Shown: positions 16,826-42,379, counted from the stretch's first letter. The stretch is 64,000 nucleotides of DNA from Chlorokybus atmophyticus (GCA_009103225.1 RHPI01001412.1:101840-165839), one strand, 5' to 3'. The notes: generated by a model not told the origin, from the sequence alone. A program made the numbers and translations.

Positions 16826-17634
16826 TTGGTATCGGAGCACGGGCGGCAAGGGGCCTGTGGGAGGGGCGGCGGCAGGCGGCAGGCACTGCAGGGGCGGCGG
16901 CAGGCACTGCGTCGGCAGGCGGCACTGCGGCGGCAAACTAGCGGTAGTTAAAAGTTTTGTTTGGTTTAACTGTTGTAGTTAAACGCTGCTGCTGGTGCCT
17001 AGCCTAGCCTAGCCTAGCCTATGCATGCCATGCCATGCCATGCCTAACTTGTCCTAGTTTAGTTGTTATTGTGTGAAGGGGGGCGGCCATCCAGGCCCCT
17101 CCCTGAAGCATTGCATCCAAGCACATAACATAGTAATCATATATTGTTTACTATAATCTTTGTGTGCTAACCACCACGTGGATTCGTGGTGGTGAAGGGC
17201 TTTTTATCTATTTTTTTGGATAAATTCCCTTGGGGGCAGTTCGGTGGCAACATCGACTGTCTCGGTACCGCCAGTCAGTGCGGTGAGGCCGCCAGAATTT
17301 TTCTGTGCGGTCGATATCAAACTCACAACTCACAACTTGTCGATATCGGCCTGTAGGGCTGATTCAACGAGATTTTGGCACTTTGGGTGTCAATTGTGAT
17401 TGTAAGTTGAGCTGGGTTGTACAAAGTGAAAACTTTGAGCAGCCATAGCTCGTGAGCCGTCGCGTGCATTCGCGTGCGGTTTGTTGCACAGTGATTGTCT
17501 AGTTGAGAGGTGTGTGGAGAGCTCTTGTTTGGGCTGAATACTCCACGTTTACCCCTCCAAACTTGACAGGACAAAATCACTAGTATTCGACGTTTTCATA
17601 GTGCACAACTTTCCGTGTTTGTGCACTATTTGAA

Positions 17635-22000: not shown

Positions 22001-22860
22001 TGGCTCAGTTTTGGAAGTCGCTATGCAGCTTCTTACACATTCAGCAGAACATGAGCACTGCTTACCATCCACAGACGGATGGTCAAACAGAACGCGCCAA
22101 TCAAGTGATTGAGGAAACCATCCGGCATTATGTGAGCCCGAATCAGAGTGATTGGGATATTTATCTCCCAATGGCTGAATTTGCGATCAATAATGCATGG
22201 CAAGAGAGTGTGCAGGAGACTCCGTTCTTCTTGAATTACGGCGTGCATCCACTGAGTCCTGCGAATTTAAAATTGCCCGCAACCGATATAACTCGCGTAC
22301 CTGCAGCGCGCGAGATGGCTTCGGCCATGCAGGATAGGTTAGCGTTGGCAAAAGACTGTCTGCGCGCAGCGCAAGACAGACAAAAAGCCCAAGCTGATGC
22401 GCATCGTAGAGAGGCCACCTACGATGTGGGCTGTTCGGTGCTTTTAAGTACCAAAAACGTATCCATCAAAAGAGTGGGTACCCGCAAGTTTTTCCCTCGC
22501 TGGATAGGCCCTTTCAAAGTGATTGATCGGGTCGGCACTCACGCGTATCGTTTGGATTTACCAATGTCGATACGAATTCACAATGTGTTTCATGTGAGTG
22601 TACTGAAACCGTACCGATCAGACGGTCGGGTTCAACCTCCTCCACCCCCAGTCGCAGTGGATGGTGACAATACATTTGAGTATGAGGTGGAAGCAATCCT
22701 AAGTCACCGTAAGCCTCGACGCGGACGCGCGCCGTCCTACTTGGTGAAATGGAAAGGGTATGGTGTTGAACACAATACATGGGAGCCCGAAAGGAATCTT
22801 ACCAACTGCCAAGAGGTTCTTCGGGGGTACTGGAGTACTGTGTCCACACGCGAACGGTAA
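19090..22860 (+). CDS. pol of chromovirus copy A (N-terminal extra domain, protease, RT, RNase H, integrase, chromodomain)
   Basis: Uninterrupted frame: LIDTGATHNF, YLDD, DASTLGCGAVL, HHCC, SDRDPRF, GPF, YEVEAILSHR...YLVKWKGY...NTWEP. Confidence 0.96.
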   Translation, partial: DYAVADVAKVDSQLLEIQAVNWFDNLSQMHVMTHAWQTHHKLPLFDVATVEANTCVLVHVKFNMLTDVLHTLSELQCKHRSLSVVAMVPKYHGPWLKYTRGGTVLKQFTKRETGTIRLSAILINPRISHGFLATFQGRVVPLLWTFSGTMQGVNSSFLIDTGATHNFVDEQWVARNKIMRKPSAFSAAGAGGTLPVTGEVKLKVKIGNYYANLAFIVVAINISGVDVVLGQEWQNNVTMTLDTGARLCTVKKGGKRITLSVKGSHSLEFKQPDPALLTALQVKRALRKNTPAFLVHLSSSDDIAPGSTEGVADLIEEYQDVFSDELPGLPPDRGVGHTIPLIPDSDPPFRPIYRLSPRERGEMETQIKELLEKGLIEPSSSPFGAPILFVMKKNGKLRMCVDYRALNKITVKNRYPLPRIDDVFDKLSGNAYFSTLDLTSGYHQIRIHSADVYKTAFRTPSGHYQYKVLPFGLTNAPAVFQKEMNKIFGNILGKYVMVYLDDIIVFSKTKEEHKQHLEAVFTLLRKHHLFASLAKCDFCKSELPFLGHVVSGAGVKPDPRKVQVVKNWPQPKNIHQLRSFLGLANYFRKFMMGYSTVVMPLTKLLRKDAPFSWTSDQEAAMQQVKLALTSAPVLALPNWDKHFTVVSDASTLGCGAVLLQDGRPCAYESRKFIPAEVNYTTTEQELLGVVHALETWRCYLEGVQFTVVTDHNPLVYFSTQLTLSRRQARWNEFLSRFTFEWVYRPGRTNVADPLSRCPSLLAVMRAQLLATQVTLPANDAFVQSVLHGYSLDPWFSRQENIQQLEARDNLYYMGASLVIPDHAGLRMQCIADVHDPPYAGHFGNRKTTKAAQQLYWWPSLPVDVKRYVDTCDKCQRDKPLRQKPAGLLRPLPVPDGKWESVSMDLITELPETALGHTAVAVFVDRLTKMVHIVPCRTEIGSRELAMVFVASVFKLHGLPRNFVSDRDPRFVAQFWKSLCSFLHIQQNMSTAYHPQTDGQTERANQVIEETIRHYVSPNQSDWDIYLPMAEFAINNAWQESVQETPFFLNYGVHPLSPANLKLPATDITRVPAAREMASAMQDRLALAKDCLRAAQDRQKAQADAHRREATYDVGCSVLLSTKNVSIKRVGTRKFFPRWIGPFKVIDRVGTHAYRLDLPMSIRIHNVFHVSVLKPYRSDGRVQPPPPPVAVDGDNTFEYEVEAILSHRKPRRGRAPSYLVKWKGYGVEHNTWEPERNLTNCQEVLRGYWSTVSTRER

Positions 22861-22982
22861 AAGGGTGCTGGTAGACATCTTTACCGCTTCGGCCCTGGTT
22901 CTCTCATTGCTTTCGTTTTGTGACTCGTGATGGGGCTTTGCTAACCCTTCAATGAGGACATTGAAACCTAAGTGGGGGGGAA

Positions 22983-23321
22983 TGTAACGGTGTGCTACCT
23001 CCATAGAGGTTCCCCGCCCTTATTTAGGATTAAATAAGGGTCCCAACGGGATTATACAGCCTATTAAGCCTTATTAGGGCCGTTAACCTAGTGTTAAGGC
23101 CCTAATGTAGTGTTACTTAACTATAACACTGATATCGACATGAGACATGAGTCTCATGTGGATATCAGCTGCATGGCGGCGCTGCTAACGCAGCGGCCGC
23201 CATAGCCAGAGCATCTTGTGCTCTGGCAACTGCCCCGGCAGTGGCGGCGGCGGCGGCGAGGCTGGTGGTGGTGTTGGGGTAGGGGATTAAAGGGAGGAGG
23301 GGCACACCCTCTCTCCTGACA
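22983..23321 (+). repeat. 3' LTR of chromovirus copy A
   Basis: Direct repeat of 16487-16825, followed by TSD GTGCG. Confidence 0.97.
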
Positions 23322-23444
23322 GTGCGAGTAGCTTGTAGCTGGGTAGAGGCGGCGGCGGCGGTGTTCGTGGCGTCGTAGGTGAGCAGCACAAAAGCACGGT
23401 TGATTATGTGAAGGAGTGCCAGCAGAGGAGAAGGTGTGTCGCAC

Positions 23445-23471
23445 GATCCGGGGGGACAACTCGTGGACGGA
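23445..23471 (+). repeat. Left terminal inverted repeat
   Basis: gatccggggggacaactcgtggacgga. Confidence 0.93.
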
Positions 23472-23905
23472 AATGTTGTTGACACATCGCATGTTATTCT
23501 TGTTTCTTGACAACAGGTACCACCTTGTTGGAAAACGTTTGACAACAGTTGCGCAAACATGTTGCAGAAACTTTGCCAACTGCTGCACATAAAGGTTACA
23601 ATTGCACATGTCTAACAAGGGTTGTGTGAAACGTGAAGTTGGAATTATCTTGCCAACTAATGCACATAAAGGGTGCAATTTCTTATGTTCAAGGAGGGTT
23701 GTGTGAGTAGTGATGTTGTATAAGTTTTGCCAACATCATGCCTCATATGTTTTGAAAGGCATGTCTTACGCGGAAGTGGCAACATGCACTCGCTGCCGTA
23801 GTTGGCCACGATTGGCCAACAGTGTGGAGGTCACAATGAACAAACACACAAATCTAGTCAACTGTTCGACTGTGCTGTTGACACTGTGTGTGATCATGTA
23901 AGCTA

Positions 23906-26810
23906 TTACAGCACATCTAAAATCATCTCATGATACTTGTCGGGAATTACAAAGACAGACTCCTTAATCTTTTTCCATGTCATTCTGGACGAGTTGCATC
24001 TCTCTTGCTTCTGCTTTCGGCTCTCTCGTTCCATCGGAAAACGTGCTACGCACCTCAACAGGCTAACCGATAATCTGGCAGGCTTTTGTGGCTGAGGCGG
24101 TAGGAAACATAGGTACCTCCTGGAATATTCTGCCGCTGTCACAATCGAGTCATCAACTCTGCGGAAGTAGACTCCTGTGACGTATAGTGTGTCTGCAGGT
24201 ATGATGACTCCATAAGCGTCGGGCCGCATAGCCGTGGATTTACTCGTGGCGACTTGTTTAGTCAATTGCAAAACCCAATAAGGTGCAGAGGCCTCATATT
24301 CATCGGAGCTCTTATCCGCAGCCACCACAAATGTGTCTCCGACGCTCAAGGAAAGCGCCAGCGCCTCCTGGTTTAAGTATAGCAACTGCACATAGCACAA
24401 GTTAGATAACGATGCTCAACCCAACGCATAAGCCTAGCACTCACATCTTGCTCAATCTCTTCTCCGTCTTCCTCGCTTGCAATCAGCTTTTGTCGTAGCC
24501 ATCTAGGAACGTGAGACTTGTTCAGGCAATGGCTGTAATCTTCGTCTAGGCAGCTGCTGAAGAAGCATGAAAACCTTCGCGAGATAAATCGGTCAACTTC
24601 TCCGGTTCCTTTTATGCATTGAAATTGTTGAGTGCCTGGTACTAAGCGATAGGAGCGCCCTGTCTTGTCATGATCTACTTCATGGAGCTCAACAAGATGC
24701 ACAAACCGCTTCTGAGCTTTGGCTTGCTCTTCACGGGCTGCGTATGATGACTCGGCTCCTCGGCTAAGCACCTGTTGCGCGTACTGAACTATAGTTGCAG
24801 CATCCACTATTTCGGCACTTTGCTCGCTGGCCCTATCCAGGTGCCGTTTCAGTGTCCCTCCTTGACCGTCATGTTCACCCTTGCCATGTTGCGGGCAAGG
24901 ATAATGCCATTCCATATGAACGGTGTTGAGCTCGTTTGCTTCTGTATGCATGGATGTCATATAAGCAGCCGGAGCGCTATATTGAGCAACTTGCGCAAAA
25001 TGGTTGGCACACTTATACTGGACTGCACAGTTGTCACTCCAGCTGATGACCTTTTGCATGTCTATCCCTCTCTCTCTGTAGTCTCTGAGAAGCCGTTTCA
25101 AGCAATGGTGAACAAAGAAGGAGTCTTTTGAAGATCATCCGATATCCAAAAATGAACATGCAATGTAAAATCCGGTAAGCCGCTGATGATCTTGTTGATC
25201 TGTTGGTAAAACTATGCCAACTTGGCATAGTTTGTCTGCTTGTTGAACAAGCAGGCTTATGAGCGTACCTCTTTGACGCGTATCGGCTGGTCGTCTGTCG
25301 ATGTCTCACCATCTACATGCTCTTCAGCGTGACGGTAGATGAGTTGCACCAAGCTCACCACGGAGCGGTTTGCGAAATGCTGCTGCATGAGCTCGTTGTT
25401 TGGCTTGAAAGCGTAATTTTCGGAGAAATCACTGATGCTGACGATCGTGCCTTGACAGAAGGTCTGTAAGCACTGCCTTTGCTGCTCCGCTTACCACTGC
25501 GACAAGAACGAATGGAGCTTGAAGTCCTTCAGCTGCTTCTGCAGGCGGCTGATAAAGTCAACAAAGGTCATGGGCTGCTTGAGAAAGTCTACTCTTGCGT
25601 ACTCGGTGGCGGCTTCACCGTTCTCCGCTTTGCCTGGTTGCATGCGCTTTACGTAGAGCCTAGGCTGTAGCAACTGATGCTTTTCTGATCGCTCTAATGG
25701 ACATGTCGGGAACTTAATCCATCCGCAGTGAGGGCAGTCTCCAGTGATGCAGAGGTGGTTGTAGTAAGCGCTGTCCGTTTCCTTAGTGCAAGAAGTACAG
25801 TCACGCAGGCCGGTGACCGATGAACCCGACAGTGGTGAGTCCAGCAAACGGCACTTGGTGTAAAGTTGACATCTGCAGCGGTGTCGGCAAGTGCAGTCTT
25901 TTTTGACCTACATGCACGGCTGTTACCAGATGCATAGCTTTGATTTACACAAGCTCTTACCGTAACATTCATACCTGACACGCATCGCATGGGCATTTAC
26001 AATGCGCGTGCTTTCTCTGCCGGAACTGAGACAAAGCCATCACAAGCTCTTTCATCTCAGTATGCTGCGAACATACGCACACATGTCGAACGTCGCGTCC
26101 TCCTACATAGTATGGCTTGACCTTCTAAAAAACTCGTTGATGCACGTCGATAAGTGGGTTCTCAGCTCGGAACTTCAAGTAAAGTGCCGTTTGTGTCGTG
26201 CCTTCTAAAAAACGCTTGGTGACATACTCGCCAGCTAATCGTTTACCAGTGGACATACGCAACAACATCTTATCACGCTTGCATGCAGACTCTCTGGTGT
26301 TGAGGATCCAAAAGTCCTCGATCTGTTGAAAAATCTGCGGTGTCACCTTGTCTTTGCGTGCACGACGCCCTTGAGTGCTCCAGTCGTCCAGGTACGTTAC
26401 TTCTTGATAAAACCTTTGACGACGTATCTTGAGCACTGAAGCAACCTCCAAAATTCGCACCGACCTGCTGTCGCCAATTGCTGATCTTGCCGCTTTCATC
26501 AGAACATTCCTTGCCGTTCTATGCGCATTGGAGCGGGAGCTCTTGATGCTGTTGTATGCCGACTTGAACATGTTAGATATCGTTCTGTAGGCAGGAGCTC
26601 TTTTGACGACTTCCAAATAGCTATCTTGAGCGACGGCTGCTGCATTCTTGGGTGCTTTCAGCAGGGATCTCAAAATGTCTGCTTTGATGGTGTCATCTCC
26701 TTGACAGGTCTGTTCTAGTACCTCCTGCATGGCGGCAACTGACTGCTTGACCTGGTATTCCTTTGCTCTTTGTCGTCCGCGTTGAGACTGGGATCCATTA
26801 TTTGCGGACC
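23906..26810 (-). pseudogene. Sola2-like DDD transposase, spliced, disrupted
   Basis: KVKPYYV...CVCSQH; CITGDCPHCG; DFSENY (25413-25430); ISDD; WSDNCAVQYK (WSDNC 25027-25041); HGKGEHDGQGGTLKR (HGKGEHDG 24865-24888); RRFSCF..CL...C.N..HV. In-frame stops (F*KVKP at 26125-26127, QW*AEQ near 25491) and at least two frameshifts. Confidence 0.82.
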
Positions 26811-27859
26811 TGCCAGGAGATGGCAAAACTTTACCAACAACACAGGCTGTGCTGGTTTGACCGCCAAAATAGCTGACCTAACTTGAGGCTAGATTTATCC
26901 AACTACACGGGCAGTGCGGGCAAGAGGAGATGTTGTATTGTGCGCTGATGCAGGTATCATCGCAGTTGTTGGCAAACCTTATCCAACAACAACAAAGGCT
27001 ATGCCATGCTATCGACCCCAAACAAGGCGGGGTCACCGTCTTGCGGCACGCTCTATCAAAGCCTTAAGCTCAAGTCCGCGAAGTTAGTACATTTGCCAGT
27101 AGGCCAAAACGCTAGTTGGCAAATTTTGCCAACTAGCGTTTTGATGACGCTGACGTGCACAGAGCATATGGCACAACCCTTGTTTGCAGCATGCGTTATG
27201 ACCCATTTTGCCAACTTTGAAACCTTCAAGTGCATATATGGACACAGACAGCATGCAATGCACATTGCAAAAGACTGGTGGTGCCATACCTCTGGCTTTG
27301 ACTATGCACCATAGCCAGCCGCCATGCGGCCGTAGTTGAACGATAGCCTACTCCGCTGCTTGTTGTCGCACCCTTCGAAATCACAAATGTAGACGCAACA
27401 ACTGCGCACACAGCAATGCGTCACTACAGCACTGCATGTAGCGGCACCACTTGCAATTGCGTTCAACAAAGCCTACACACACATAGCAAAAACACATGCC
27501 TACCTCACACCTACCTTGCTTTCAATTGGCAACAAACAAACAGCGGACCTGCCTGGACCTGCCTAAGCGCAGCAGCATAATATGACTGCACAAGCAACGG
27601 ACGTGTACAGCAGCTGAACATCTTGACATATGGTTCGTATGTGGATGCTAGCATTCACGTTGCTCACCAGCTCTCACACACAGCTGGACCTGCCTTCGTG
27701 CAGCATAAAACGCACCTGATCCATGCAGTTCTCACCAGCCCTGCGCCAGCTCTCTCAACCGCCTAGCCAGCAGCCAGCATTGTGGCGCCACCGCCTACAT
27801 TGTGACTAAGCAAAGGAGAAGCGCACTACTCTAGCCTGGCAAAGACGACCCAGCTGACC

Positions 27860-28533
27860 CGCCGCCCTCGCCGCCGCCCCCGCCGCCACGCCCGCCGTCG
27901 CCGTAGTCGCAGTGTAAGCTAGCATGCAAGCAGAAGCTCAGCTAGCTCCGAAGCTGCTGGTAGCATGCTTAGGGTTCCTCCCCACTCCCCAACTCGCTGT
28001 TGCACACCGTGTATGCCAAGCCACCCCTCCCACACCATCAACCCAAGGCTCAACACCTCTGGCAGCAACACGCACTAGTACACATGCATTGCTCAGCTCA
28101 CAGCACACGTTGCAACTTTGCATGCCTGCCTCACGCAACTTGGGCACCACACAAGTAGGCACCCAATTTTGGCTTGCGCGTAACACCCGTAGGGTAGGAT
28201 ATAAAACTCTTGCACATGAGTTCCAATTAACATAACACTTGGCACATAAAGTCTTTATTGCAGCTGGAGCACGTTGCAAAAAAACTCATGCAGAATAATC
28301 AACCGATGCAATTGTTATTACGAACAAAAGTTTGGGGTTATTTAGCGAAGGTCATTACGTAGCACCCTGGTATGTCACATGCAGCTTGTGCAAATGATGT
28401 TAATATAACATGAAATGAGAAATAGACTCTTCATTGCATCAGAAATACGGTGCTGTGGTCGGTGACAACGGCGGCGACGGCGGCGTGGGCGACGGCGGCG
28501 TGGGCGACGGGGGCGAGGTGCGGGCGGTGAGCA
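27860..28533. promoter_or_regulatory. Putative bidirectional promoter/leader region between the divergent transposase and cargo genes
   Basis: Mirror-image GC-rich GGCGGCGAC/GGCGTGG tracts: minus strand about 27860-27905, plus strand about 28467-28528, the latter just before the cargo ATG at 28534. Confidence 0.45.
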
Positions 28534-29641
28534 ATGATGGGGCGACCCAAGCAAAAAGCTGCGAAGGACAGCCAAAAGGAGGCCAGTCAAGCCACCGAGG
28601 AAACGACGATAATAAGGTGAGTTGTTAAGCTGTTTAGCTTTGTTGCGTAGCAGCTTGGTTGTTAGCTGTTGTAGCTTTAGACAGCAGAAGTTGCTATGCA
28701 CAACTGTTCCAAAGCATCAGCTACTACTAACGTCTTCTAGCAGAGTTGCCAGCAGCACAAACATGCATGTCCGTGCTACTGGCAACTCTGCGGCAACATG
28801 CATGTCCGTTGCTGCTTGACAACTTGTTCAATGCAGCAGAGTTGTCAAGTAGCAATGCCTGGGTTTGTAATTGGTTTGTAATTGAACCCTTCTGCTGTTC
28901 ACTGCTGCTCACAACTTGTTGTATTAATTGCAGCAGAGTTGCCAGCAGCACGGACATGCATGTTGCTGCTAACAACATGCCTGTTCGCTGCTGCTTGACA
29001 ACTTGACAAATTCAGATTGGTGTATGCTTTGTACATGTTGTCGCAAGCACGCAGCACGCATATGTTTTGCTAGACAGAGCTGCATACAGCTGCTGGTGCA
29101 TGTGGTGCAGCCGAATTGCCAACATCACAGCATGGACACGCGGTGCTGCTGGCAATTCCGCAACATGTGTGCAACAGTTGAATGTGTGCATGTCAGGAGA
29201 GAGGGTGTGCCCCTCCTCCCTTTAATCCCCTACCCCAACACCACCACCAGCCTCGCCGCCGCCGCCGCCACTGCCGGGGCAGTTGCCAGAGCAAAAGATG
29301 CTCTGGCTATGGCGGCCGCTGCGTTAGCAGCGCCGCCATGCAGCTGATATCTCATGTCTCATGTCGATATCAGTGTTATAGTTAAGTAACACTACATTAG
29401 GGCCTTAACACTAGGTTAACGGCCCTAATAAGGCTTAATAGGCTGTATAATCCCGTTGGGACCCTTATTTAATCCTAAATAAGGGCGGGGAACCTCTATG
29501 GAGGTAGCACACCGTTACATTCCCCCCCACTTAGGTTTCAATGTCCTCATTGAAGGGTTAGCAAAGCCCCATCACGAGTCACAAAACGAAAGCAGTGAGA
29601 GAACCAGGGCCGAAGCGGTAAAGATGTCTGCCAGCACCCTT

Positions 29642-32600
29642 TTACCGTTCGCGTGTGGACACAGTACTCCAGTACCCCCGAAGAACCTCTTGGCAGTTGG
29701 TAAGATTCCTTTCGGGCTCCCATGTATTGTGTTCAACACCATACCCTTTCCATTTCACCAAGTAGGACGGCGCGCGTCCGCGTCGAGGCTTACGGTGACT
29801 TAGGATTGCTTCCACCTCATACTCAAATGTATTGTCACCATCCACTGCGACTGGGGGTGGAGGAGGTTGAACCCGACCGTCTGATCGGTACGGTTTCAGT
29901 ACACTCACATGAAACACATTGTGAATTCGTATCGACATTGGTAAATCCAAACGATACGCGTGAGTGCCGACCCGATCAATCACTTTGAAAGGGCCTATCC
30001 AGCGAGGGAAAAACTTGCGGGTACCCACTCCCTTGATGGATACGTTTTTGGTACTTAAAAGCACCGAACAGCCCACATCGTAGGTGGCCTCTCTACGATG
30101 CGCATCAGCTTGGGCTTTTTGTCTGTCTTGCGCTGCGCGCAGACAGTCTTTTGCCAACGCTAACCTATCCTGCATGGCCGAAGCCATCTCGCGCGCTGCA
30201 GGTACGCGAGTTATATCGGTTGCGGGCAATTTTAAATTCGCAGGACTCAGTGGATGCACGCCGTAATTCAAGAAGAACGGAGTCTCCTGCACACTCTCTT
30301 GCCATGCATTATTGATCGCAAATTCAGCCATTGGGAGATAAATATCCCAATCACTCTGATTCGGGCTCACATAATGCCGGATGGTTTCCTCAATCACTTG
30401 ATTGGCGCGTTCTGTTTGACCATCCGTCTGTGGATGGTAAGCAGTGCTCATGTTCTGCTGAATGTGTAAGAAGCTGCATAGCGACTTCCAAAACTGAGCC
30501 ACAAATCGCGGATCGCGATCTGACACGAAGTTGCGGGGCAAGCCATGCAACTTGAACACAGACGCGACAAAAACCATCGCCAACTCACGGGAGCCTATCT
30601 CCGTGCGACAAGGGACAATGTGGACCATTTTTGTTAAACGATCCACGAAAACTGCAACCGCAGTGTGACCTAATGCTGTCTCTGGGAGCTCAGTAATTAA
30701 GTCCATACTCACACTTTCCCATTTGCCATCAGGAACAGGCAAAGGTCGCAGCAACCCAGCGGGTTTCTGACGTAACGGCTTGTCACGCTGACATTTGTCA
30801 CAGGTGTCAACATAACGCTTTACGTCAACAGGCAACGATGGCCACCAGTACAGCTGTTGCGCTGCCTTGGTAGTCTTGCGATTTCCAAAGTGCCCAGCGT
30901 ACGGTGGGTCGTGTACATCAGCTATGCATTGCATGCGTAGCCCAGCATGGTCAGGTATCACCAAGCTAGCACCCATATAATACAAGTTGTCTCGTGCTTC
31001 AAGCTGTTGTATATTCTCTTGCCGTGAGAACCATGGGTCTAAGGAATACCCATGCAAAACAGATTGCACAAATGCATCATTAGCGGGCAATGTAACTTGC
31101 GTCGCAAGCAATTGCGCACGCATAACTGCCAATAATGACGGACAGCGACTTAAAGGATCTGCCACATTAGTTCTGCCAGGCCGATATACCCATTCAAAAG
31201 TAAATCGCGACAGAAACTCATTCCAGCGAGCTTGCCTACGTGACAAGGTCAGCTGCGTTGAGAAGTATACTAATGGGTTGTGATCAGTCACCACTGTGAA
31301 CTGAACTCCCTCTAAGTAACATCGCCAAGTTTCGAGAGCATGTACGACACCAAGCAACTCTTGCTCAGTAGTAGTGTAGTTTACCTCCGCTGGGATAAAC
31401 TTCCTACTTTCATAAGCACATGGTCTGCCGTCTTGCAGTAGTACTGCACCACACCCAAGGGTGGAAGCATCACTGACCACAGTGAAATGTTTATCCCAAT
31501 TTGGCAATGCCAATACTGGAGCTGAAGTTAATGCTAACTTCACTTGTTGCATAGCAGCTTCTTGGTCTGACGTCCAAGAAAATGGCGCGTCCTTTCGCAA
31601 CAATTTAGTCAAGGGCATTACAACTGTAGAATAACCCATCATAAATTTGCGAAAATAATTTGCCAATCCCAAAAATGATCTCAGTTGATGAATATTTTTG
31701 GGTTGAGGCCAATTCTTGACAACTTGCACCTTGCGAGGGTCAGGCTTTACACCCGCACCACTCACAACATGTCCCAAGAATGGTAACTCCGATTTGCAAA
31801 AGTCACATTTTGCAAGGCTGGCAAATAAATGATGCTTCCGCAACAAAGTAAACACCGCTTCTAAGTGTTGCTTATGTTCCTCTTTGGTTTTACTAAAGAC
31901 AATAATGTCATCCAAGTAAACCATAACATACTTGCCAAGTATATTACCGAAAATTTTATTCATTTCCTTCTGAAACACAGCAGGCGCATTCGTCAATCCA
32001 AAGGGTAGCACTTTGTATTGATAATGGCCCGAAGGTGTTCTGAAAGCTGTCTTATAGACATCAGCGGAATGAATTCGGATCTGATGATATCCACTTGTCA
32101 GGTCTAATGTACTGAAGTATGCATTACCTGATAGTTTATCAAACACGTCATCAATCCGTGGCAACGGGTATCGATTTTTCACCGTGATTTTGTTTAAAGC
32201 ACGATAGTCCACACACATGCGCAATTTTCCATTCTTTTTCATCACAAATAGGATGGGTGCGCCAAAGGGTGAAGAACTTGGTTCAATCAATCCTTTTTCC
32301 AATAACTCCTTGATTTGTGTTTCCATTTCCCCCCTTTCTCTAGGGCTTAGCCTATATATTGGCCGAAAAGGAGGATCACTATCAGGAATTAATGGTATAG
32401 TGTGTCCGACACCTCGGTCAGGAGGCAAGCCCGGCAACTCATCTGAGAACACATCTTGATATTCCTCAATGAGGTCTGCCACACCTTCAGTACTACCCGG
32501 CGCAATGTCATCTGATGAAGACAAATGTACCAGAAAAGCCGGTGTGTTTTTGCGCAACGCACGTTTCACCTGTAGTGCCGTGAGTAACGCAGGGTCGGGT

Positions 32601-33412
32601 TGCTTGAATTCCAAGCTATGCGACCCTTTCACAGACAATGTAATCCGCTTACCGCCTTTCTTTACTGTGCACAAGCGTGCACCCGTATCCAATGTCATTG
32701 TGACATTATTTTGCCATTCTTGGCCTAGTACCACATCAACACCAGATATGTTGATTGCTACTACTATAAAGGCAAGATTGGCATAATAATTACCAATTTT
32801 AACCTTCAATTTTACTTCTCCCGTCACTGGCAATGTACCCCCAGCACCGGCAGCCGAAAATGCTGAGGGTTTGCGCATGATTTTATTGCGCGCAACCCAT
32901 TGCTCGTCCACGAAGTTGTGTGTCGCACCAGTGTCAATCAAAAACGAGCTATTCACACCTTGCATTGTGCCACTGAATGTCCACAACAAAGGTACCACTC
33001 GTCCTTGAAAGGTAGCCAAGAATCCGTGACTAATGCGGGGGTTGATTAATATTGCTGATAATCGAATTGTCCCAGTCTCGCGCTTGGTGAATTGTTTTAA
33101 AACAGTACCCCCTCGAGTATACTTCAACCATGGGCCATGATATTTTGGCACCATTGCTACCACACTCAGGGATCTGTGTTTACATTGCAATTCACTCAAT
33201 GTGTGCAACACGTCGGTAAGCATGTTAAATTTCACATGTACCAGTACACAAGTATTTGCTTCCACTGTTGCAACATCAAACAGTGGTAACTTGTGATGTG
33301 TTTGCCATGCATGCGTCATTACATGCATTTGAGACAGATTATCAAACCAGTTAACTGCTTGTATCTCAAGCAACTGACTATCAACCTTTGCTACATCAGC
33401 CACAGCGTAATC
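29642..33412 (-). CDS. pol of chromovirus copy B
   Basis: Open frame identical to the copy A Pol except R/G in SIK[R/G]VGTRK. Confidence 0.96.
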   Translation of the reverse strand, partial: DYAVADVAKVDSQLLEIQAVNWFDNLSQMHVMTHAWQTHHKLPLFDVATVEANTCVLVHVKFNMLTDVLHTLSELQCKHRSLSVVAMVPKYHGPWLKYTRGGTVLKQFTKRETGTIRLSAILINPRISHGFLATFQGRVVPLLWTFSGTMQGVNSSFLIDTGATHNFVDEQWVARNKIMRKPSAFSAAGAGGTLPVTGEVKLKVKIGNYYANLAFIVVAINISGVDVVLGQEWQNNVTMTLDTGARLCTVKKGGKRITLSVKGSHSLEFKQPDPALLTALQVKRALRKNTPAFLVHLSSSDDIAPGSTEGVADLIEEYQDVFSDELPGLPPDRGVGHTIPLIPDSDPPFRPIYRLSPRERGEMETQIKELLEKGLIEPSSSPFGAPILFVMKKNGKLRMCVDYRALNKITVKNRYPLPRIDDVFDKLSGNAYFSTLDLTSGYHQIRIHSADVYKTAFRTPSGHYQYKVLPFGLTNAPAVFQKEMNKIFGNILGKYVMVYLDDIIVFSKTKEEHKQHLEAVFTLLRKHHLFASLAKCDFCKSELPFLGHVVSGAGVKPDPRKVQVVKNWPQPKNIHQLRSFLGLANYFRKFMMGYSTVVMPLTKLLRKDAPFSWTSDQEAAMQQVKLALTSAPVLALPNWDKHFTVVSDASTLGCGAVLLQDGRPCAYESRKFIPAEVNYTTTEQELLGVVHALETWRCYLEGVQFTVVTDHNPLVYFSTQLTLSRRQARWNEFLSRFTFEWVYRPGRTNVADPLSRCPSLLAVMRAQLLATQVTLPANDAFVQSVLHGYSLDPWFSRQENIQQLEARDNLYYMGASLVIPDHAGLRMQCIADVHDPPYAGHFGNRKTTKAAQQLYWWPSLPVDVKRYVDTCDKCQRDKPLRQKPAGLLRPLPVPDGKWESVSMDLITELPETALGHTAVAVFVDRLTKMVHIVPCRTEIGSRELAMVFVASVFKLHGLPRNFVSDRDPRFVAQFWKSLCSFLHIQQNMSTAYHPQTDGQTERANQVIEETIRHYVSPNQSDWDIYLPMAEFAINNAWQESVQETPFFLNYGVHPLSPANLKLPATDITRVPAAREMASAMQDRLALAKDCLRAAQDRQKAQADAHRREATYDVGCSVLLSTKNVSIKGVGTRKFFPRWIGPFKVIDRVGTHAYRLDLPMSIRIHNVFHVSVLKPYRSDGRVQPPPPPVAVDGDNTFEYEVEAILSHRKPRRGRAPSYLVKWKGYGVEHNTWEPERNLTNCQEVLRGYWSTVSTRER

Positions 33413-34879
33413 CTATTCAACCTTCTTGGCTTTGCCCTTCGCCTTCGTAGGACAGGCCTTTGCAACGTGACCCGGCTGATGGCAGATGAAACAGGTGCGA
33501 GCTGCAGTAGGTGCATTACCAGCAGACGTACCACCAATTCGAGGAGCGAATGTCTTCGCTTTCTTCGCCACATGTACACTCGGCGGAGGATAGCGCTTTA
33601 TTCCCCCCCCTTGCGGCTTGGCCATAGCTGTCACGTTCGACTTTTCCTGCACGACCGTGTCATCATTGTACAGGTAAACACTTAGCTTTTGCAGCTTGGC
33701 CAAGTCATCAGGAACCCAAGGAAGCCCCGTTGCAGTGTTGTACTGCAGCTGATCGCGAACACGCGCATCCAAGCCACGCTTGTACAACTCGAACTGCTCA
33801 GCTTTGTCCATAGGCATCAGGCCGCTATTGGCACGACCAACTAATGCTTGGAACTCCTGCAGATACACTGATGCTGCTCGACCATTCTGTCGCAACTTGC
33901 TAAGTTTGTTACGAGCCTGAGTAGCCGGATCCATGCCACCATAGCGCTCCATCAGAAACTGAAACAGTGCTGGTACTGTCTTCACAGCGCCATGCTCTGT
34001 TTGTCGTGCCCACTCGGCGAGAGCATCAGATGGCATAAGCAACTCAGCAACGGCAACGTGCTCACCCACCGGGCGCTTTAGCGCTGTCAGGTAATGTTCG
34101 ACAGTCACCACCCAATCATGGATACTTACACTACCGTTAGGCTTGAACTTTTCAGGTTTGTTCAATGCCGTAACCGGCAGCCCCACTGATGCGCCAACTG
34201 ATGAAGCAGCACCCGCTACTTGCTGACGCAGCGCCATCAACTCAGATTGCATCGCATCGAGGCGTGCCTCCAACTTCACTCGGCCAGCCAACTTATTTTC
34301 CAAGTTAGGTCCCAAGTACCAGAACACATCCTTGCAACGCTGCTGCGTTTCAACCATCAAGTTGGCTAAGGCCTCAAACGCCATCCGCTTCCCTTCGTAT
34401 GGGAGCGGCCTATCGTAGACGGCCATCAGAGCAGCCACTTTTGGATCACCACGCACGAGTGGCGGAACATTGTTCGTCAACTCGTGCTCAATCATGCGGA
34501 TCACCATCTCCTTACTAGTGCGAGGGAGAGTGGCAAAATCTGTTTCATAGCCATTACGAACCTTCTGCGCCCATGCATCCCACACTTCTTGACGAAGCTG
34601 CGGGTGGGCGTCAAGTAAAGTCTTGCGCTCGCGCGCATACTTTTCAATGGCTCCGCCAATGACACTCGGTGTGTCCATTACAGCTGGCTCACTGTGGGTA
34701 GACAGGTCGGGGGAAGCTTCGCTATCTTGCTTAGCCTCTTCTTCCTTGTCACTGTCAGTGAGCTTATAGCTCTCACTCGTGTCCGAGTCCCTCACTTTGT
34801 CATCACTGGATGGCTCATATGAGGATGATGAATCAGGGACGGTGAAGTACTTTTCACCTCCCTCTCCTTGGTCAGACAT
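33413..34879 (-). CDS. gag of chromovirus copy B (from MSDQGEG)
   Basis: ATG present; capsid-like WVVTVEHYL..., CCHC knuckle; ends in a TAG in frame with pol. Confidence 0.92.
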   Translation of the reverse strand: MSDQGEGGEKYFTVPDSSSSYEPSSDDKVRDSDTSESYKLTDSDKEEEAKQDSEASPDLSTHSEPAVMDTPSVIGGAIEKYARERKTLLDAHPQLRQEVWDAWAQKVRNGYETDFATLPRTSKEMVIRMIEHELTNNVPPLVRGDPKVAALMAVYDRPLPYEGKRMAFEALANLMVETQQRCKDVFWYLGPNLENKLAGRVKLEARLDAMQSELMALRQQVAGAASSVGASVGLPVTALNKPEKFKPNGSVSIHDWVVTVEHYLTALKRPVGEHVAVAELLMPSDALAEWARQTEHGAVKTVPALFQFLMERYGGMDPATQARNKLSKLRQNGRAASVYLQEFQALVGRANSGLMPMDKAEQFELYKRGLDARVRDQLQYNTATGLPWVPDDLAKLQKLSVYLYNDDTVVQEKSNVTAMAKPQGGGIKRYPPPSVHVAKKAKTFAPRIGGTSAGNAPTAARTCFICHQPGHVAKACPTKAKGKAKKVE

Positions 34880-36404
34880 CTGCCCAAGGATAACACTGTT
34901 CAAATAGTGCACAAACACGGAAAGTTGTGCACTATGAAAACGTCGAATACTAGTGATTTTGTCCTGTCAAGTTTGGAGGGGTAAACGTGGAGTATTCAGC
35001 CCAAACAAGAGCTCTCCACACACCTCTCAACTAGACAATCACTGTGCAACAAACCGCACGCGAATGCACGCGACGGCTCACGAGCTATGGCTGCTCAAAG
35101 TTTTCACTTTGTACAACCCAGCTCAACTTACAATCACAATTGACACCCAAAGTGCCAAAATCTCGTTGAATCAGCCCTACAGGCCGATATCGACAAGTTG
35201 TGAGTTGTGAGTTTGATATCGACCGCACAGAAAAATTCTGGCGGCCTCACCGCACTGACTGGCGGTACCGAGACAGTCGATGTTGCCACCGAACTGCCCC
35301 CAAGGGAATTTATCCAAAAAAATAGATAAAAAGCCCTTCACCACCACGAATCCACGTGGTGGTTAGCACACAAAGATTATAGTAAACAATATATGATTAC
35401 TATGTTATGTGCTTGGATGCAATGCTTCAGGGAGGGGCCTGGATGGCCGCCCCCCTTCACACAATAACAACTAAACTAGGACAAGTTAGGCATGGCATGG
35501 CATGGCATGCATAGGCTAGGCTAGGCTAGGCTAGGCACCAGCAGCAGCGTTTAACTACAACAGTTAAACCAAACAAAACTTTTAACTACCGCTAGTTTGC
35601 CGCCGCAGTGCCGCCTGCCGACGCAGTGCCTGCCGCCGCCCCTGCAGTGCCTGCCGCCTGCCGCCGCCCCTCCCACAGGCCCCTTGCCGCCCGTGCTCCG
35701 ATACCAATGTCAGAAGAGAGGGTGTGCCCCTCCTCCCTTTAATCCCCTACCCCAACACCACCACCAGCCTCGCCGCCGCCGTCGCCACTGCCGGGGCAGT
35801 TGCCAGAGCAAAAGATGCTCTGGCTATGGCGGCCGCTGCGTTAGCAGCGCCGCCATGCAGCTGATATCCACATGAGACTCATGTCTCATGTCGATATCAG
35901 TGTTATAGTTAAGTAACACTACATTAGGGCCTTAACACTAGGTTAACGGCCCTAATAAGGCTTAATAGGCTGTATAATCCCGTTGGGACCCTTATTTAAT
36001 CCTAAATAAGGGCGGGGAACCTCTATGGAGGTAGCACACCGTTACAGTGCACGAGTTAGTGTTGGGGTCTTCATGCATTGCGCTATGCTTTCGCGTTGTT
36101 AATGGTTGTTGCAGCTGAAGTAGACAATTACTAACATTTTGTGGCTCTGCAGAAACACAAGGGCGAGCGGCATCAAACGCAAAGCGGAGGCCAGCAGCAG
36201 CCGTGCCAAGGAGGCAAAGAAGAAGCGGGCAGGGTTTATGTAAGTATGCTGATCAGTTGCATTGCTGCTTGCTGCATTGCTGCTGCATTGCTGCTGGGCT
36301 ACCGCTGGTCTACAAACTTGTTACAAGAATCTACCGTATCAAGGCCAGCGCTGTGTATAGAATATTCTTATATTGAGAGGGGCTCGCTGTTCTCTGATGG
36401 AGCC

Positions 36405-36592
36405 GCCAGCAGGGCTGTTGGTCTGCCTGCTCTTGCGTGTTGGCCAAATTTTGCCAACAAGCAAAAGCAACCAGCATATAGCTGTTGGTTTTCCTGCTCT
36501 TGCATGTTGGCCAAATTTTGCCAACGAGCAAGAGCAGCTAGCAGGGCTGTTAGTCTGCCTGCTCTTTTGTGTTGGCCAAATTTTGCCAACTG
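36405..36592. repeat. Three tandem copies of about 65 bp in intron 2 of the cargo gene, each containing GTTGGCCAAATTTTGCCAAC
   Basis: Visible units ending in tgttggccaaattttgccaac near 36438, 36505 and 36570. Confidence 0.85.
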
Positions 36593-39500
36593 GTCTCAGG
36601 CTTTGCTGCCAAATTTACTTACTGAAACAATTGTTCTATACCTCTTGCTATTGCAGTGATCCCCTCAAAGATAAGTTGCGAGCCCCTCAAAGAGAAGTCT
36701 CCGATAACGATGACGACGATGACAGTGTACCTGAGACGGACGACAAACAGAGCAATCCCGATCTTAACTCTGGCGATGAGTTAGATCAATATGACGAGCT
36801 TAACGCCGAAAACAAAGCTCTGGAAAAAGGAGACTACCACTGTAACTTTGTTGACGGACTTCCTGCTATAGTTGTAGCAGAACTTTTAGTAACAATACAT
36901 GTAACTGCAGGGAACACGATCCATGTCAGGCATGGCTCCTTCTGGAAGAAGTTCGAAGAGCTTGAAGATCTACGCGAGCTGTTCAAAGGAGCTGCTCGAA
37001 AAATACACAATCTCGCCAAGTGGGAGGCTGCAAAAGAAAAAAATGAGACCAAAGATAAGCAGAAGACTGTGCGTTACTATCTGACAGTCACAAAAGAGGT
37101 CAGTCATGTCGTCTGTTAACGCTGGTTATTGACTATTCTCAAAGGTAATTGATCAATTCCTTGTTTGTTGCTGAACGATCATTGGTCCGAGTATCGTCTC
37201 ATGTATGCATGGTCTTTCTCACCAAAGGAAGTCCGAGTGCTTGTCATCCCATCGAGCGTGCCAGACCCAGATGACGAGTTTCTTACCGATCGCAAGACCT
37301 TCCTGTTTGATTTGCCGGTAAACAAAGCCCATTGGACACCCACCGGGAAAAAGCTGGTCAGTCTAGAGAACGGCAAGGATCTTTCTGACATGATGATCAA
37401 GGACGTCACCAAGGCTAATAATCCACCATTGCTTGTCAATCTGTACGAGTCTCTGCAAGGTACGTTCACTATGTGCTGTACTTCCCACCAAACCCCGCTC
37501 CAAAACATCCTGACGATTTATCAATTGCTGCAGCAATGACAGCAAAGACGCTCAACTTGAGTGCTGATCCCTCTCAGCTGCCGTCGCCAAACAAAAGAGG
37601 CAAGGGCAAAGCACCAAAGACTAAACCGGTCATCCCTACAGACACGGAGGGTGCAGCAGGTACGCAGTGTCTTCAGAACACAATGCCTCACTGCATGTAC
37701 AAGTTGACAAAACTTTACCAACTGTGCAGGCGATGCTCTGCCACCCATTATACTGCCGCCCCTGTTCTCCAATGTCGATACACATACGTACAAAATCAGC
37801 CTGTCAAGAATGCGTTCAGCAGAGGGGGCACATCAAGCGCGCAAAATTGAAAAATCCAGGCTGGTCTATCTGGAACAGGCTATGAGGAGCGGCTACAATA
37901 AAGGGCACAAGCCATGGCTTCTGCTGGCTTACAGAAATGACAAAGGACGAGAGATGCCTGTCAAGGAGGAGTATTTCAATAAATACCACATCGACCGCGC
38001 AAAAGACTTTACCTATGAGGTGCTCGGCGGCAATCATTCGTTCATCGTCGCATCCAAGCTAGCCAAGGAGCAACCAAATAATGACTGGCTACAGTTTGAG
38101 TGGTGTGAGGTATGCTAGCTTATAGCACTTGTTGCATTGCAAAAATTGAACAAAAAAAAGCAAGCTGAATCTGTTCCCTGCACAGGTAGTGTCCGGGCTA
38201 ACCGACGAGCAGGCCCATCTGTACGCTAGACAGCACAACGAGCAAGATGACCACAAAAAGCCATCCACATTTGTGACCAAGGTGGCCACATTTCGTGACA
38301 AGTACTTCACGCGCGGAAAACCCGCCAAGCCAGTAGTTGGGCCAGGCTCAGACAAGTATTCAGCTGGCTGGAAGGCTTGCTTGTTGGATCTGGCCTTGCT
38401 CATGGACAATGAAATTTAGTGGAAAGGCAGAAACTATCAGCTGATTTCGAGAGAATACAGAAGTGAAATCGCGTAAGTTTTGTTTGCGTACATTATGACT
38501 CTGCAGAATGTTGTGTTGTTCTCGCAATCGTCATCAACCTATGCAGGCTGGCGGTCAAACTGCCACTGACTGAGGAGCAGTACGAACGCTTTTTTCAAGT
38601 CCTTGATGATGTTGATGACATCGACAAGCCATTGCCTCGTCACACCTTGGAGCTGTTCACTCATCTATCAGGAGAGCAGATCATGAAGGTGTTGGATGAC
38701 ATCGAAGCTGGCACCATCGATGTCAGCGTGCATTGTGAGTTCAAGCCTTACCACCTAAATGAGCAACGCAAAGGACGCTTTGTGTCTTTTTTGGCATGTA
38801 AAGTGATACCAGGCGAGGTCTTTGAAACATCTGGGTAAGCTAGCACATGCAAAGTTATGTCTGTTCATTGCAGGTATGTATAGCAGTAACCATTATCAAC
38901 AAAGTCATCACTGTCATCAGGTGTGAAAGTCGTTTGGCGGATCAGGCGCCAGAGTTGTATGCAGCCAGAAACCAGCTGTTTGAGGTCCTTCTCAAGGGAG
39001 GTCATAACCTCTTCTTCAAGCAGCTCACAAGCGTCAAAGCTGATTTAGAGTCGAAGCACTCAGTCAAGCATCTGAATATCCCATTCGCCATCATGGACAA
39101 AGTCTGCCAGCTTGGCAAGATACCGCTTTCAGAGCCCCGTCAGGTCGGCGACGTCCCCGGCGCCGTGGTTATGCCCTTGTAAGTATGGAGCTGTGTTGTC
39201 CAAATTTTACCAACAGGTGCTCAATGCAGCCATACTATATCTCTATGCTTGTTACGCAGGCGTTTTCCTGTGCACGCTAGTGGCGATCGCCCCCAGGAGT
39301 TCCATGCGGTCAAACAGAGATGCGTACCGCGCTTTGAAACTGTGCAAAAATTTGTTCGAGAGCTGCAAGTCAAGGAGTACCCTTCCTTCCCGCTTGTCTT
39401 CTTTGATGTTCCTTTCCACAAGAACGATGACCGCGACAAGGCCTTCACCATCGAAGACTTCCAGGAAATGACTGATGCATTGTGCCGCCAAAACAGCGAA

Positions 39501-41976
39501 CTGAAGTGGTGGACGCTTGTAGCCTTTGTACCTTTGCATCACGTGAGTGCGGTCAAGGGAATCCTGCAAAACTCCGATGCATATATCGTCGAGTTTACTA
39601 CATATACGCACGCCGCTACAAGTAAGTTGTGTCTGTGCAGTTACTGCCTTCGGTATTACAGCTACATTACTGAAAATTGTTATGTTGCGCAGAGCTGCAA
39701 GTGTTCCCTGGCTTATACAAGAGCCAAGACCGGACTGAGCCAGTCCTCATTGCACTTTACAAGCAAGTCGACGACTCTCTAAAGGTCACCAATCTCAAGA
39801 CCTGGTTCAAGCTGCGCGAGCAGGATGACTTTGTCTGGCATGATCCCTCGCATCCTAAGTTCTGCCAGCTGGGACCATACGAGGAAGAGTCGCCAAACGT
39901 GGAGGAGCTGAAGTCTTCTTCACACGGAGCAGAGGAAGATAACGAGATGAATGAGGGCGAAACTGAAGATGAATTGTTGGCTGTCGTTGCTGCAACACCC
40001 TCTGAGATTGACTTTTCAGAAGGCATGACAAAGGCAGCCACAGGAGCTGTGAAGCGCTGGTGGCTCAGCAAGTTCTTCAATGTTGAAGGTCATCCACCTA
40101 TCTGCTGGCAACAACGACTGTGCAGCACCCTGGCCGGAGATTTTCTACCCGCCAGAAAAAGCAACAGCGAAATATGGGTTCTCGACCTCGGTGCTGGAGC
40201 TGGTGGTCTGAGCGACGATGCACTCAAGTTGGGCTACAGCATTTTTGCAGTAGACAACGATTCCACCAGCATGTGCCAGCTCGAGGACCGCTTCTACGGC
40301 TACTGCAGCGAACTCAAGCACTACGTAAGCCAGTGAGTGTTGGTATAATTTTGCCAACAGCGTCATGCTATCTGGAGGTACTTAAATCACTCACTTTACT
40401 GCAACACCTTTTGTTGCAGCAAGAGAAGCATAGCTCACTGCGCTCAGCTGCTGCTAAAGATAACGCCGCTGCCCTGCCACGGATCAAGAGCAAGGACGAG
40501 GTCGTGCAAGATCGCCTGCTGAAATTTTTTCCTAGCATGAACTTCGGCGATGTCAAGCACATGGCGTTTCTTCTGCGCTGGGTTGCTCAACCAGGCACAG
40601 CTGCAATCCTAAAAGACGAGGAAGACACGCTGAAGGACATCAGGGACTACTGTGATAAACGCCGCGCTGACATCCAAAGCAGTAAGCGCAGTGTGTTGTA
40701 TATGTTTGTAGCACACATATGTTCGCTGACTTGATCATGTGCGCAGTGGACAAGTTTACCGAAGTGAGGGGCGATATTATCGGTGCGAATTACCTGAAGC
40801 TTGAAGCGGAATTGCAGTCGACTCCAGATCCGCTAGCAGGGAAGCTCACTCAGCTGGATGTCAACCCAGACTCGGCATCGCGGGTGGTTGCACTCATCAC
40901 GGATGATCAGGGAGCCAGCGACAAAGCTAGAGAACCTGCGCACAATGTTGAGATAACAGCCCAAAAAGATGCAGAGCCGGTGTCGCAGGCGACGCCAGAG
41001 AAGCCAGCGCCAAAGCCAGTGCAAGTGCCAGTGGCAGACACACATCCGCACTGCGCCAGTCCGCTTTGCGACATGCCAATCAGTTTTGACGATCCGACCC
41101 CAACGGTGTGTCGCAATGAAGGCTGTCTCCGCCGCTTATATCATCTCTGCTTCACAGCCTACTCGGGGACTAAGGATGGCAGCAACGCCCGGTGCCCAGA
41201 TCATTGGGTTGAGGCCAACAAGGACAACAAGCTGAAGCAAAGCTGGGTGAACAAGGTTCGCAAGGCTGGTAAGACTGAGGGCGCGCTGAATGTTTGGGGC
41301 TGTGACAAATGCAAGGACTACCGCGGCTGCAGAAAGTGTTTTGGTCCTTTGGCGGTAATGGCCAGCCAGGAGACGCCTAGCCAGGGAGAACTCATGGAGT
41401 GAAAGAGATGTACCCCCATCGCAAAAAAAAAAACGTGTTGTGATGTGCGTGTAGTGGTTGGAATAGTGCCCTGATACAAAGGCATTTGCCCTGTATATAC
41501 AGCCTTGACCCTTGGAGTAGTTTGTACCCTGCCTTGTGACCTTGTTACAAAGATAAATGTTTTGTGCAAATTCTGATCTGCTTGTACAAGCAGCTGTTGG
41601 CAGAACTTTGCCAACACACACATGAGTGCATGCTCATTATCATCACAGTGTAGGCCTAGTTGTATGAATTGTGGTTGGCTTTACTTGACCAACAATGGTG
41701 AAGCTACACTCCTGAAAGCTTACAAGTAGCTGCAAAGAGGCACTAGCTTCATGCATAGTAGTTGACATTATTTTGCCAACAACAGAGAGAGGCTTACACT
41801 CCTGAAGGCATTCAATAGCTGCAAAGAGACACAACAACATCCAAGAGACAAAGCTACATGCATTGCTGATTGCCTGCTTGCATGCTGGTATTGCATGCAA
41901 TTGCTGATGTCAAGCGGCCAGCAAAGTGTTTTAGTTGTCTGCAGATTGCTATCACATCACATGATATGGGAACAAC

Positions 41977-42003
41977 TCCGTCCACGAGTTGTCCCCCCGG
42001 ATC
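41977..42003 (-). repeat. Right terminal inverted repeat
   Basis: tccgtccacgagttgtccccccggatc is the exact reverse complement of 23445-23471. Confidence 0.93.
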
Positions 42004-42379
42004 GCACGACACGCCAGAAGCGTTGCCGAGGCAATGCCAAGGAGCCAGGCAGCAGCAGCAGCAGGAGGAGTGTTGACGCAGAGCCTGGTGGTGTCGGCTA
42101 GCCAGCAAGCCACATGACGCCAGCAGCAAGGGTAGGATAGCAAGCATGATTCACTGTGTGCCGGTGTGTTGCACAATGCTAGTGAAGTTTCTGAGTATGA
42201 GTATGAGTATTAGCAGCCCTGTGCCAAGGCGTTGCCAAGGCAGGAACAGCAGCATAAAGCGCAGGAGGAGGAGGACTAGGTAAGGATGGTGTGCTGCGCA
42301 AGCTTTGCTAATGAGGTACATAACCGTACAACGGCATGTCTTGATGGTTACATAATTGCAACAACAGTGCCGGGACAAT

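Follow-up and report, generated by a model that had tools for sequence, protein, structure and literature searches.

We analysed a stretch of 64,000 nucleotides from Chlorokybus atmophyticus (GCA_009103225.1, RHPI01001412.1:101840-165839), which we call the window and in which all positions are counted from the first letter. The segment from 23433 to 42015 (18,583 bp, or about 11.7 kb without a nested long terminal repeat (LTR) retrotransposon) is probably a decayed copy of a multi-copy Sola2-type cut-and-paste transposon with an element-borne, putative methyltransferase-like cargo gene. The transposase is encoded on the minus strand; the cargo gene lies divergently to it, on the plus strand, inside the same terminal inverted repeats (TIRs). 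The original prediction, made from the sequence alone, had called the element autonomous. This does not hold for the present copy, which is inactivated by three nonsense codons (two TAA in the transposase, one TAG in the cargo gene) and by one nested insertion, the LTR element between the two genes. Since the transposase is killed by its two nonsense codons, any movement would need transposase from intact copies.

Ends of the element and its other copies

The segments 23445-23471 and 41977-42003 form a perfect 27-bp inverted repeat, exactly as predicted, where the expectation from shuffled sequence is 0 matches. Note that this perfect core sits within a longer, imperfect TIR. A repeat finder pairs two 45-nt arms, 23433-23477 on the plus strand and 41971-42015 on the minus strand, which are complementary at 40 of 45 positions (89%). 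There are two short direct repeats that could represent the target site duplication (TSD): GCAC, which adjoins the 27-bp core on both sides (23441-23444 and 42004-42007), and AGAA, which lies directly outside the 45-bp arms (23429-23432 and 42016-42019). The TSD is 4 bp long whichever boundary is chosen, and the predicted TIR-bounded cut-and-paste element with a 4-bp TSD therefore stands under either of them.

Contigs from public sequencing runs (low-depth contigs only, with neither RNA nor raw reads) contain further copies of the right end. In one run, X1, the match of two records to the right end extends to 42016, beyond which they contain unrelated sequences that differ from each other. These contigs come from other insertion sites; they have the 12 bases past 42003 in common and diverge only at 42016. 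The match of another X1 record starts no earlier than 41971, where the 45-bp arm has its inner edge, and one record among the public contigs has an additional base in the C-run at 41998. In a second run, X2, a contig ends at 42014. These are junctions of other copies of the element, and they show that the element belongs to a multi-copy family with several insertion sites. Since the contigs of other copies diverge at 42016, the element spans 23433-42015 and its TSD is probably AGAA rather than GCAC, which would then be a part of the terminal repeat.

This moves the boundaries outwards from those of the original prediction, which had 27-bp TIRs and the TSD GCAC. With those ends, the element would insert into a palindromic target GTGTC-NNNN-GACAC, and the empty site would read gtgtcGCACgacac. 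We consider these narrower ends improbable. In their favour, GCAC is an exact direct repeat that adjoins a perfect 27-bp repeat, and palindromic targets are frequent for transposases that act as dimers. However, AGAA is an equally exact direct repeat, located outside the 45-bp arms, and the junctions themselves speak for the wider ends: the 12 bases beyond 42003 are common to two contigs from other insertion sites, the match at the third junction begins exactly at the inner end of the 45-bp repeat, and the X2 contig reaches as far as 42014. A reconstruction of the locus before the insertion, made for either choice of boundaries, contained no host reading frame that decides between them. An exact scan of metagenome contigs for the TIR gave 0 matches.

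The run X2, which belongs to a differently coded organism or sample, contains both the right end of the element (41721-42014) and the right flank of the window (42012-42176), each at 99% or more. The same insertion may exist in X2; its contigs break at the junction and the join itself is not spanned.

Two divergent genes and a common palindrome

The transposase gene (23909-26877, minus strand), delimited by its motifs, by phmmer relatives and by tblastn of the relative P0001, would encode a Sola2-type DDD transposase of about 880 codons in at least four exons. The exons run from about 26877 to 25975, from 25907 to 25269, from about 25134 to 24445 and from 24367 to 23909, and they are separated by three GT-AG introns of 67 to about 134 nt. 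All three predicted motifs were found in their places: DFSENY at 25413-25430, WSDNC (within WSDNCAVQYK) at 25027-25041 and HGKGEHDG at 24865-24888. An exhaustive phmmer search with the core exon returned 427 representatives, the best of them at 37% identity; they come from sea urchin, hagfish and a Klebsormidium transcriptome, among others. None of these 427 relatives contains a Pfam family. Since Sola2 has no Pfam model (PMC5751038), the blank Pfam result fits a Sola2 transposase.

We aligned 27 full-length relatives and found invariant D, N, D, Q, H-G-K and D columns. The catalytic blocks in this family are 81-94 and 31-43 residues apart, compared to about 86 and 38 residues, as counted by eye, in the published Sola2_DFa-2. 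The blocks of two published element-borne Sola2 transposases read MDFKEN or CDFKEN, WSDGAKHFK or WCDNARHFK, and YHGKSDVD or YHGKSECD (Bao and Jurka 2013, PMC3627910). Furthermore, two upstream patterns, F-x-K-x-x-P...D-x-C-x-x-C and the H-x-x-F...Q helix, are also common to the published Sola2 transposases. We made this comparison by eye, from motifs and spacing, as the published references exist only as supplement text. By its three catalytic blocks and their spacing the predicted protein matches the Sola2 type, and to this extent the original assignment is borne out.

Two in-frame TAA codons, at 26125-26127 and 25491-25493, interrupt the transposase. The tblastn alignment of P0001 passes through both in one frame, with an E at the position of the first and the Q of a conserved WQ at the position of the second. 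The transposase of the present copy is thus dead. We considered whether the stop at 25491 could be the start of a 64-nt intron (GTAAGC) and rejected this, as such an intron would delete the strand before the catalytic D, while P0001 aligns straight through. A variant genetic code was ruled out by the nested LTR element, whose frames run without a break for 1,252 and 500 codons.

Word-index searches for homologues of the transposase core exon and of the cargo exon with motif I (see below) found nothing, and a search with the 27-sequence transposase profile found only 7 unnamed relatives. These searches require shared 5-mers within a length window and are therefore uninformative.

Some relatives of the transposase are linked to other domains. 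One of them, P0025, has a C-terminal SET domain (PF00856, E 4e-15). Another, P0166 (1,279 aa), is encoded on a 35-kb metagenome contig, L001, beside an open reading frame (ORF) of 2,682 aa and an ORF with a SET domain (L001:22900-23430); no ParB or methyltransferase neighbour was found around it on this contig. Domains of chromatin modifiers thus seem to accompany this transposase family in other places as well.

The cargo gene (36657-41402, plus strand) was modelled with 11 exons and ten GT-AG introns of 65-129 nt, all of which are spliced in frame. Its conceptual product has 1,307 codons with a sole internal stop, TAG at 38417-38419. Since so many junctions are all in frame, we take the cargo gene to be a real gene that was functional until recently. 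The predicted divergent, spliced gene on the plus strand is present; the number of its exons was given as 13, of which we can model 11, and the start codon was not found.

Both genes and both ends are linked into one unit by a palindrome family, GTTGGC-N8-GCCAAC (20 bp, allowing up to two mismatches). The window contains 23 such palindromes, compared to 4.6 expected, and 18 of the 23 fall into the 11.7 kb of element DNA, where about 0.85 are expected; none is found in the nested LTR element. Five are found towards the left end and three towards the right. Three tandem repeats of 65-67 bp (36414-36608), immediately before the cargo gene, each contain a perfect palindrome, GTTGGCCAAATTTTGCCAAC. 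Further copies are found at 26968 and 28983, in the left part of the divergent intergenic region (26878-29190). The intragenic copies are all located in introns, at 37703, 39195 and 40339 in the cargo gene and at 25202 in the transposase gene. This distribution shows that the gene for the cargo protein of about 1,300 residues belongs to the element instead of lying beside it by chance. The palindrome is a candidate binding site for the ParB-like module of the cargo protein, described below, or for the transposase.

Putative domains of the cargo protein

The N-terminal part of the cargo protein contains a putative ParB/Srx-like region, encoded by two exons (37730-38472) and recognised by motif reading only, with GGNHS at 38026-38040 and LTDEQA at 38198. 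In the ESM Atlas, the closest neighbours of the GGNHS exon (37732-38109) are DUF3723 fragments (0.94, with 176-179 features in common); an unnamed cnidarian cluster (0.93) comes next, and then ParB_N sets, 29 of them at 0.90 or above. The Pfam model of DUF3723 itself did not match the ParB-like exon. The order of the motifs and the language-model neighbours lead us to favour, with some reserve, a ParB/Srx-like DNA-binding fold that would bind the palindromes.

Next comes a methyltransferase-like region, also in two exons (39260-40324). It contains DVPF (39405-39416), VLDLGAGAGG (40178-40207) and FAVDND (40244-40261); in the model, LVFF-DVPF is found at residue 720, a GHPP segment at 924 and VLDLGAGAGG, the motif I that would bind S-adenosylmethionine (SAM), at 954. 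The pattern of class I SAM methyltransferases is present, that is, GxGxG followed about 20 residues on by an acidic end of strand 2. Motif I and FAVDND match Methyltransf_25 at E 0.019-0.02 and PrmA, Erm and KsgA at E 0.01-0.2, all below the curated cut-offs. The DVPF tetrapeptide, which resembles the end of strand 4, precedes motif I, as it would in the permuted order, and AlphaFold predicts LVFF as a strand directly before DVPF, at low confidence. The ESM Atlas neighbours of the DVPF exon are all DNA amino-methylases (N6_N4_Mtase, MT-A70 and N6_Mtase, 0.84-0.87; N6_N4_Mtase alone, 0.85-0.87), which we use as a lead only. Motif order and these neighbours together are compatible with a circularly permuted amino-methyltransferase of the N6A/N4C kind, with DVPF as motif IV ahead of motif I; we regard this as a close call that tilts slightly to the negative.

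The C-terminal region (41043-41339) is rich in Cys and His and zinc-finger-like. It reads C-x4-C ... C-x4-C-x5-H-x-C ... C-x2-H, then C-x2-C-x5-C-x2-C. The spacing of the Cys and His residues is irregular, and Pfam reports only ZZ (E 0.04), on CDKCKDYRGCRKC.

A number of observations weigh against the reading of the element as a Sola2-type transposon with a methyltransferase-like cargo. For example, the Sola2 likeness is a judgement from motifs and spacing without an alignment statistic, and the other copies are represented in the public contigs by their right end only. The model of the cargo gene has no support from RNA, as the public runs gave no splice evidence. Its first exon, with the start codon, was not found and may lie farther upstream or beyond the LTR insertion. 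The original prediction had specified ParB, DNA amino-methyltransferase and PHD domains, and profiles confirmed none of the three, the one trace being the generic SAM motif I at E of about 0.02. Neither of the ParB-like exons matched a ParB family in Pfam, NCBIfam or PHROGs, even at E values up to 10, and the ParB box, GGNHS, is without the arginine of the conserved GxxR. No exon matched N6_N4_Mtase or MT-A70 in the same three databases, and no cargo exon matched a PHD (C4HC3) profile. Motif IV is DVPF and not (D/N/S)PP(Y/F/W). A local hidden Markov model (HMM) built from E. coli YhdJ and 10 phage beta-class enzymes scored 0.6 bits against the spliced domain, a value that many of 500 shuffles exceeded, and tblastn found no match to either methyltransferase exon in 50,697 phages. 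AlphaFold models of single exons, made without an alignment, were unusable, with a predicted local distance difference test (pLDDT) score of 34 for the ParB-like exon and 46 for the DVPF exon. Finally, the residues that follow motif I, RLLKFF ... RWVAQPGT, are also compatible with an ordinary, unpermuted class I fold that continues from there. A sequence search of the PDB with the DVPF exon gave no match at E values up to 10.

Potentially, the cargo protein is not a DNA amino-methyltransferase but an unpermuted class I enzyme that acts on protein, RNA or a small molecule, or else a dead SAM-binding module, with DVPF as a chance tetrapeptide. We see this as a serious contender, if somewhat short of an even chance. 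The sole profile signal is indeed a generic motif I that Erm, KsgA, PrmA and Methyltransf_25 have in common, the beta-class HMM gave no signal, and strand 4, a helix and a PGG-like turn can be assigned to the residues downstream of motif I. On the other hand, the exon after motif I has no Pfam match either and FAVDND is not followed by a hydrophobic candidate for strand 3, whereas the language-model neighbours of the DVPF exon are without exception DNA amino-methylases and the published accessory proteins of the same architecture have domains of the N4C/N6A type (PMC12477816).

It is very unlikely that the second gene is a captured host gene (a Pack-type cargo), or a host gene caught between the ends, with no role in the life of the element. 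Giant algal transposons do often carry genes of unknown function (PMC12477816), and the present copy is broken. However, the same palindrome family is found in introns of both genes, in their common intergenic region and near both ends, and in brown and red algae the same combination of domains is again encoded opposite transposases, which belong to unrelated superfamilies. A transposase from a superfamily other than Sola2 is more unlikely still, for example Sola1, as in Ectocarpus, or a KDZ/Zisupton-like one. The Sola2 assignment is a comparison of motifs without an alignment statistic against curated Sola references, and the Ectocarpus element with the same cargo is a Sola1. Yet the blocks and their spacing agree with Sola2_DFa-2 and Sola2_PPa-1, and the TSD of 4 bp beginning with A is like that of these two elements, whereas KDZ/Zisupton elements make 8-bp duplications.

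Repeats in the window, related systems and a possible function

The insertion that separates the two genes is, as predicted, an LTR retrotransposon; it lies on the minus strand at 29191-36046, in the central intergenic region of the transposon. It has TG..CA ends and the 5-bp TSD GTGCA (29186-29190 and 36047-36051). Its LTRs of 329 and 339 bp differ by two mismatches and one 10-bp indel. The reading frames are intact, and since gag is followed by protease, reverse transcriptase, RNase H, integrase and a chromodomain, the element is a Ty3/gypsy chromovirus. Immediately to the left of its insertion point, 28739-29148 consists of tandem repeats of about 180-190 bp with internal palindromes (AGCAGAGTTGCCAGCAGCAC...). 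A second copy of the chromovirus, inverted and with its own 5-bp TSD GTGCG, occupies 16487-23321 and ends about 110 bp from the left end of the transposon. The two copies are 100% identical over 5,519 nt, which points to a very recent retrotransposition, to gene conversion or to an effect of the assembly.

Two other pairs of repeats were found in the window. Another repeat family, or a tandem gene array, is represented by the segment 51495-53460 (about 2 kb), which recurs with 81-90% identity at 55148-57070, downstream by about 3.65 kb; shorter related segments are found at 54.6, 58.0 and 60.7 kb, and there are inverted, diverged matches at 11.8-12.5 kb. The segments 1817-2627 and 9906-10723, which lie 8.09 kb apart, are direct repeats of each other over about 0.8 kb with 94-97% identity and are probably the LTR pair of a third, older retrotransposon.

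Returning to the transposon, the original prediction knew of no Sola element with a methyltransferase. Such an element has in fact been published. Sola1-1_Ec32 of Ectocarpus is a giant TIR transposon of 21.5 kb, in which a protein of 1,104 residues with a ParB-like domain and an N4C/N6A methyltransferase is encoded opposite the transposase; its authors cite similar cases from green and red algae and propose that the protein binds to the element that encodes it and marks this element epigenetically (Dinatale et al. 2025, PMC12477816). Both systems are giant TIR elements. They differ in the transposase (Sola1 there, Sola2-like here) and in the host (a brown alga there, the green lineage here). 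The methyltransferase of Sola1-1_Ec32 is recognisable as N4C/N6A, whereas ours has no profile match and a DVPF in the place of motif IV, and the C-terminal Cys/His region is extra in the present protein.

Further published elements with comparable cargo also stand against the predicted novelty. Plavaka elements (CACTA/EnSpm-type) of red algae, described in the Bostrychia preprint, carry the accessory genes PAG2 and PAG3, with a gene for an N6A-methylase and SET and a gene for ParB and a 2-oxoglutarate (2OG) oxygenase; tandem arrays of inverted repeats adjoin the gene with the ParB domain and were read as self-binding sites (Petroll et al. 2025, bioRxiv 10.1101/2025.02.11.637652). As is putatively the case in the present element, Plavaka combines ParB-like and N6-adenine methylase-like domains, but has them in separate genes, fused to the 2OG oxygenase and to SET, and its transposase belongs to a different superfamily. 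The dictyostelid Sola2 elements DFa-1/2/3 and PPa-1/4/5 are 10-15 kb long and have Fanzor1 (TnpB-like) as their second large gene, and viral Mariner elements carry methyltransferases (Bao and Jurka 2013, PMC3627910). The dictyostelid transposases of about 880-890 residues have the same blocks (DF-x-EN, WSD-x-x-x-x-F/Y-K and HGK-x-x-x-D) at the same spacing as ours, and the TSDs are 4 bp and start with A in both. Their cargo, on the other hand, is Fanzor1 and not methyltransferase-like, and their TIRs are shorter, with 12-22 bp.

More distant parallels concern single features. KDZ transposons with TET/JBP dioxygenases are reported from fungi (Iyer et al. 2014, as cited in PMC12477816; PMC12730594). 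These are also cut-and-paste elements with a DNA-modification enzyme, but their enzyme is an eraser or oxidiser, whereas ours would be a putative writer, and the transposase superfamily differs. ParB-linked adenine methylases are known from chlorophytes, and in some permuted clades the strand-4 motif is unusual (Iyer et al. 2016, PMC4738411). DUF3723 is a conserved accessory gene, of unknown function, of the Starship giant transposons of fungi (Gluck-Thaler et al. 2022, PMC9156397). The likeness of our protein to DUF3723 is a lead from the language model, and Starships move by a tyrosine recombinase. In the literature searched we found no mention of DUF3723 together with ParB. It is conceivable, if quite improbable, that the N-terminal module belongs to one ParB/Srx-like family that includes the DUF3723 of Starships and the unnamed cnidarian proteins. 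In this case unrelated giant transposons (Starships, Sola1, Sola2 and Plavaka) would have repeatedly recruited a module that binds their own DNA, which here would read the palindromes in the introns and ends and direct a divergent permuted amino-methyltransferase to mark the element.

In summary, a transposon with such a cargo has already been published, and the present copy is a new example of it, not a new kind. It differs from the known cases in its Sola2-like transposase, the lineage of its host, the divergent motifs and the extra, potentially zinc-binding tail.

How might such an element work? Intact copies would supply the DDD transposase, which would cut at the 45-bp ends and make 4-bp staggered insertions. 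The accessory protein would bind the palindromes through its ParB-like module and, if the SAM domain is a permuted amino-methyltransferase, mark the DNA of the element, while its C-terminal zinc-binding region may contact chromatin or DNA. We would rather bet against the DNA-writing step than for it. That the cargo protein marks the element's own DNA in order to favour its expression or to time its transposition seems unlikely to us, if worth stating.

With its genes broken and the enzyme call weak, the present copy is of value as one member in an analysis of the whole family rather than as a stand-alone discovery. It adds a Sola2-type case from the green lineage to the Sola1 of brown algae and the Plavaka of red algae, which points to a repeated acquisition of such accessory proteins by unrelated transposases. 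The palindrome in the introns, near the ends and in the common promoter region offers a concrete candidate binding site. Transposons that have a possible DNA-marking enzyme together with a module that binds their own repeats could control their own chromatin state.

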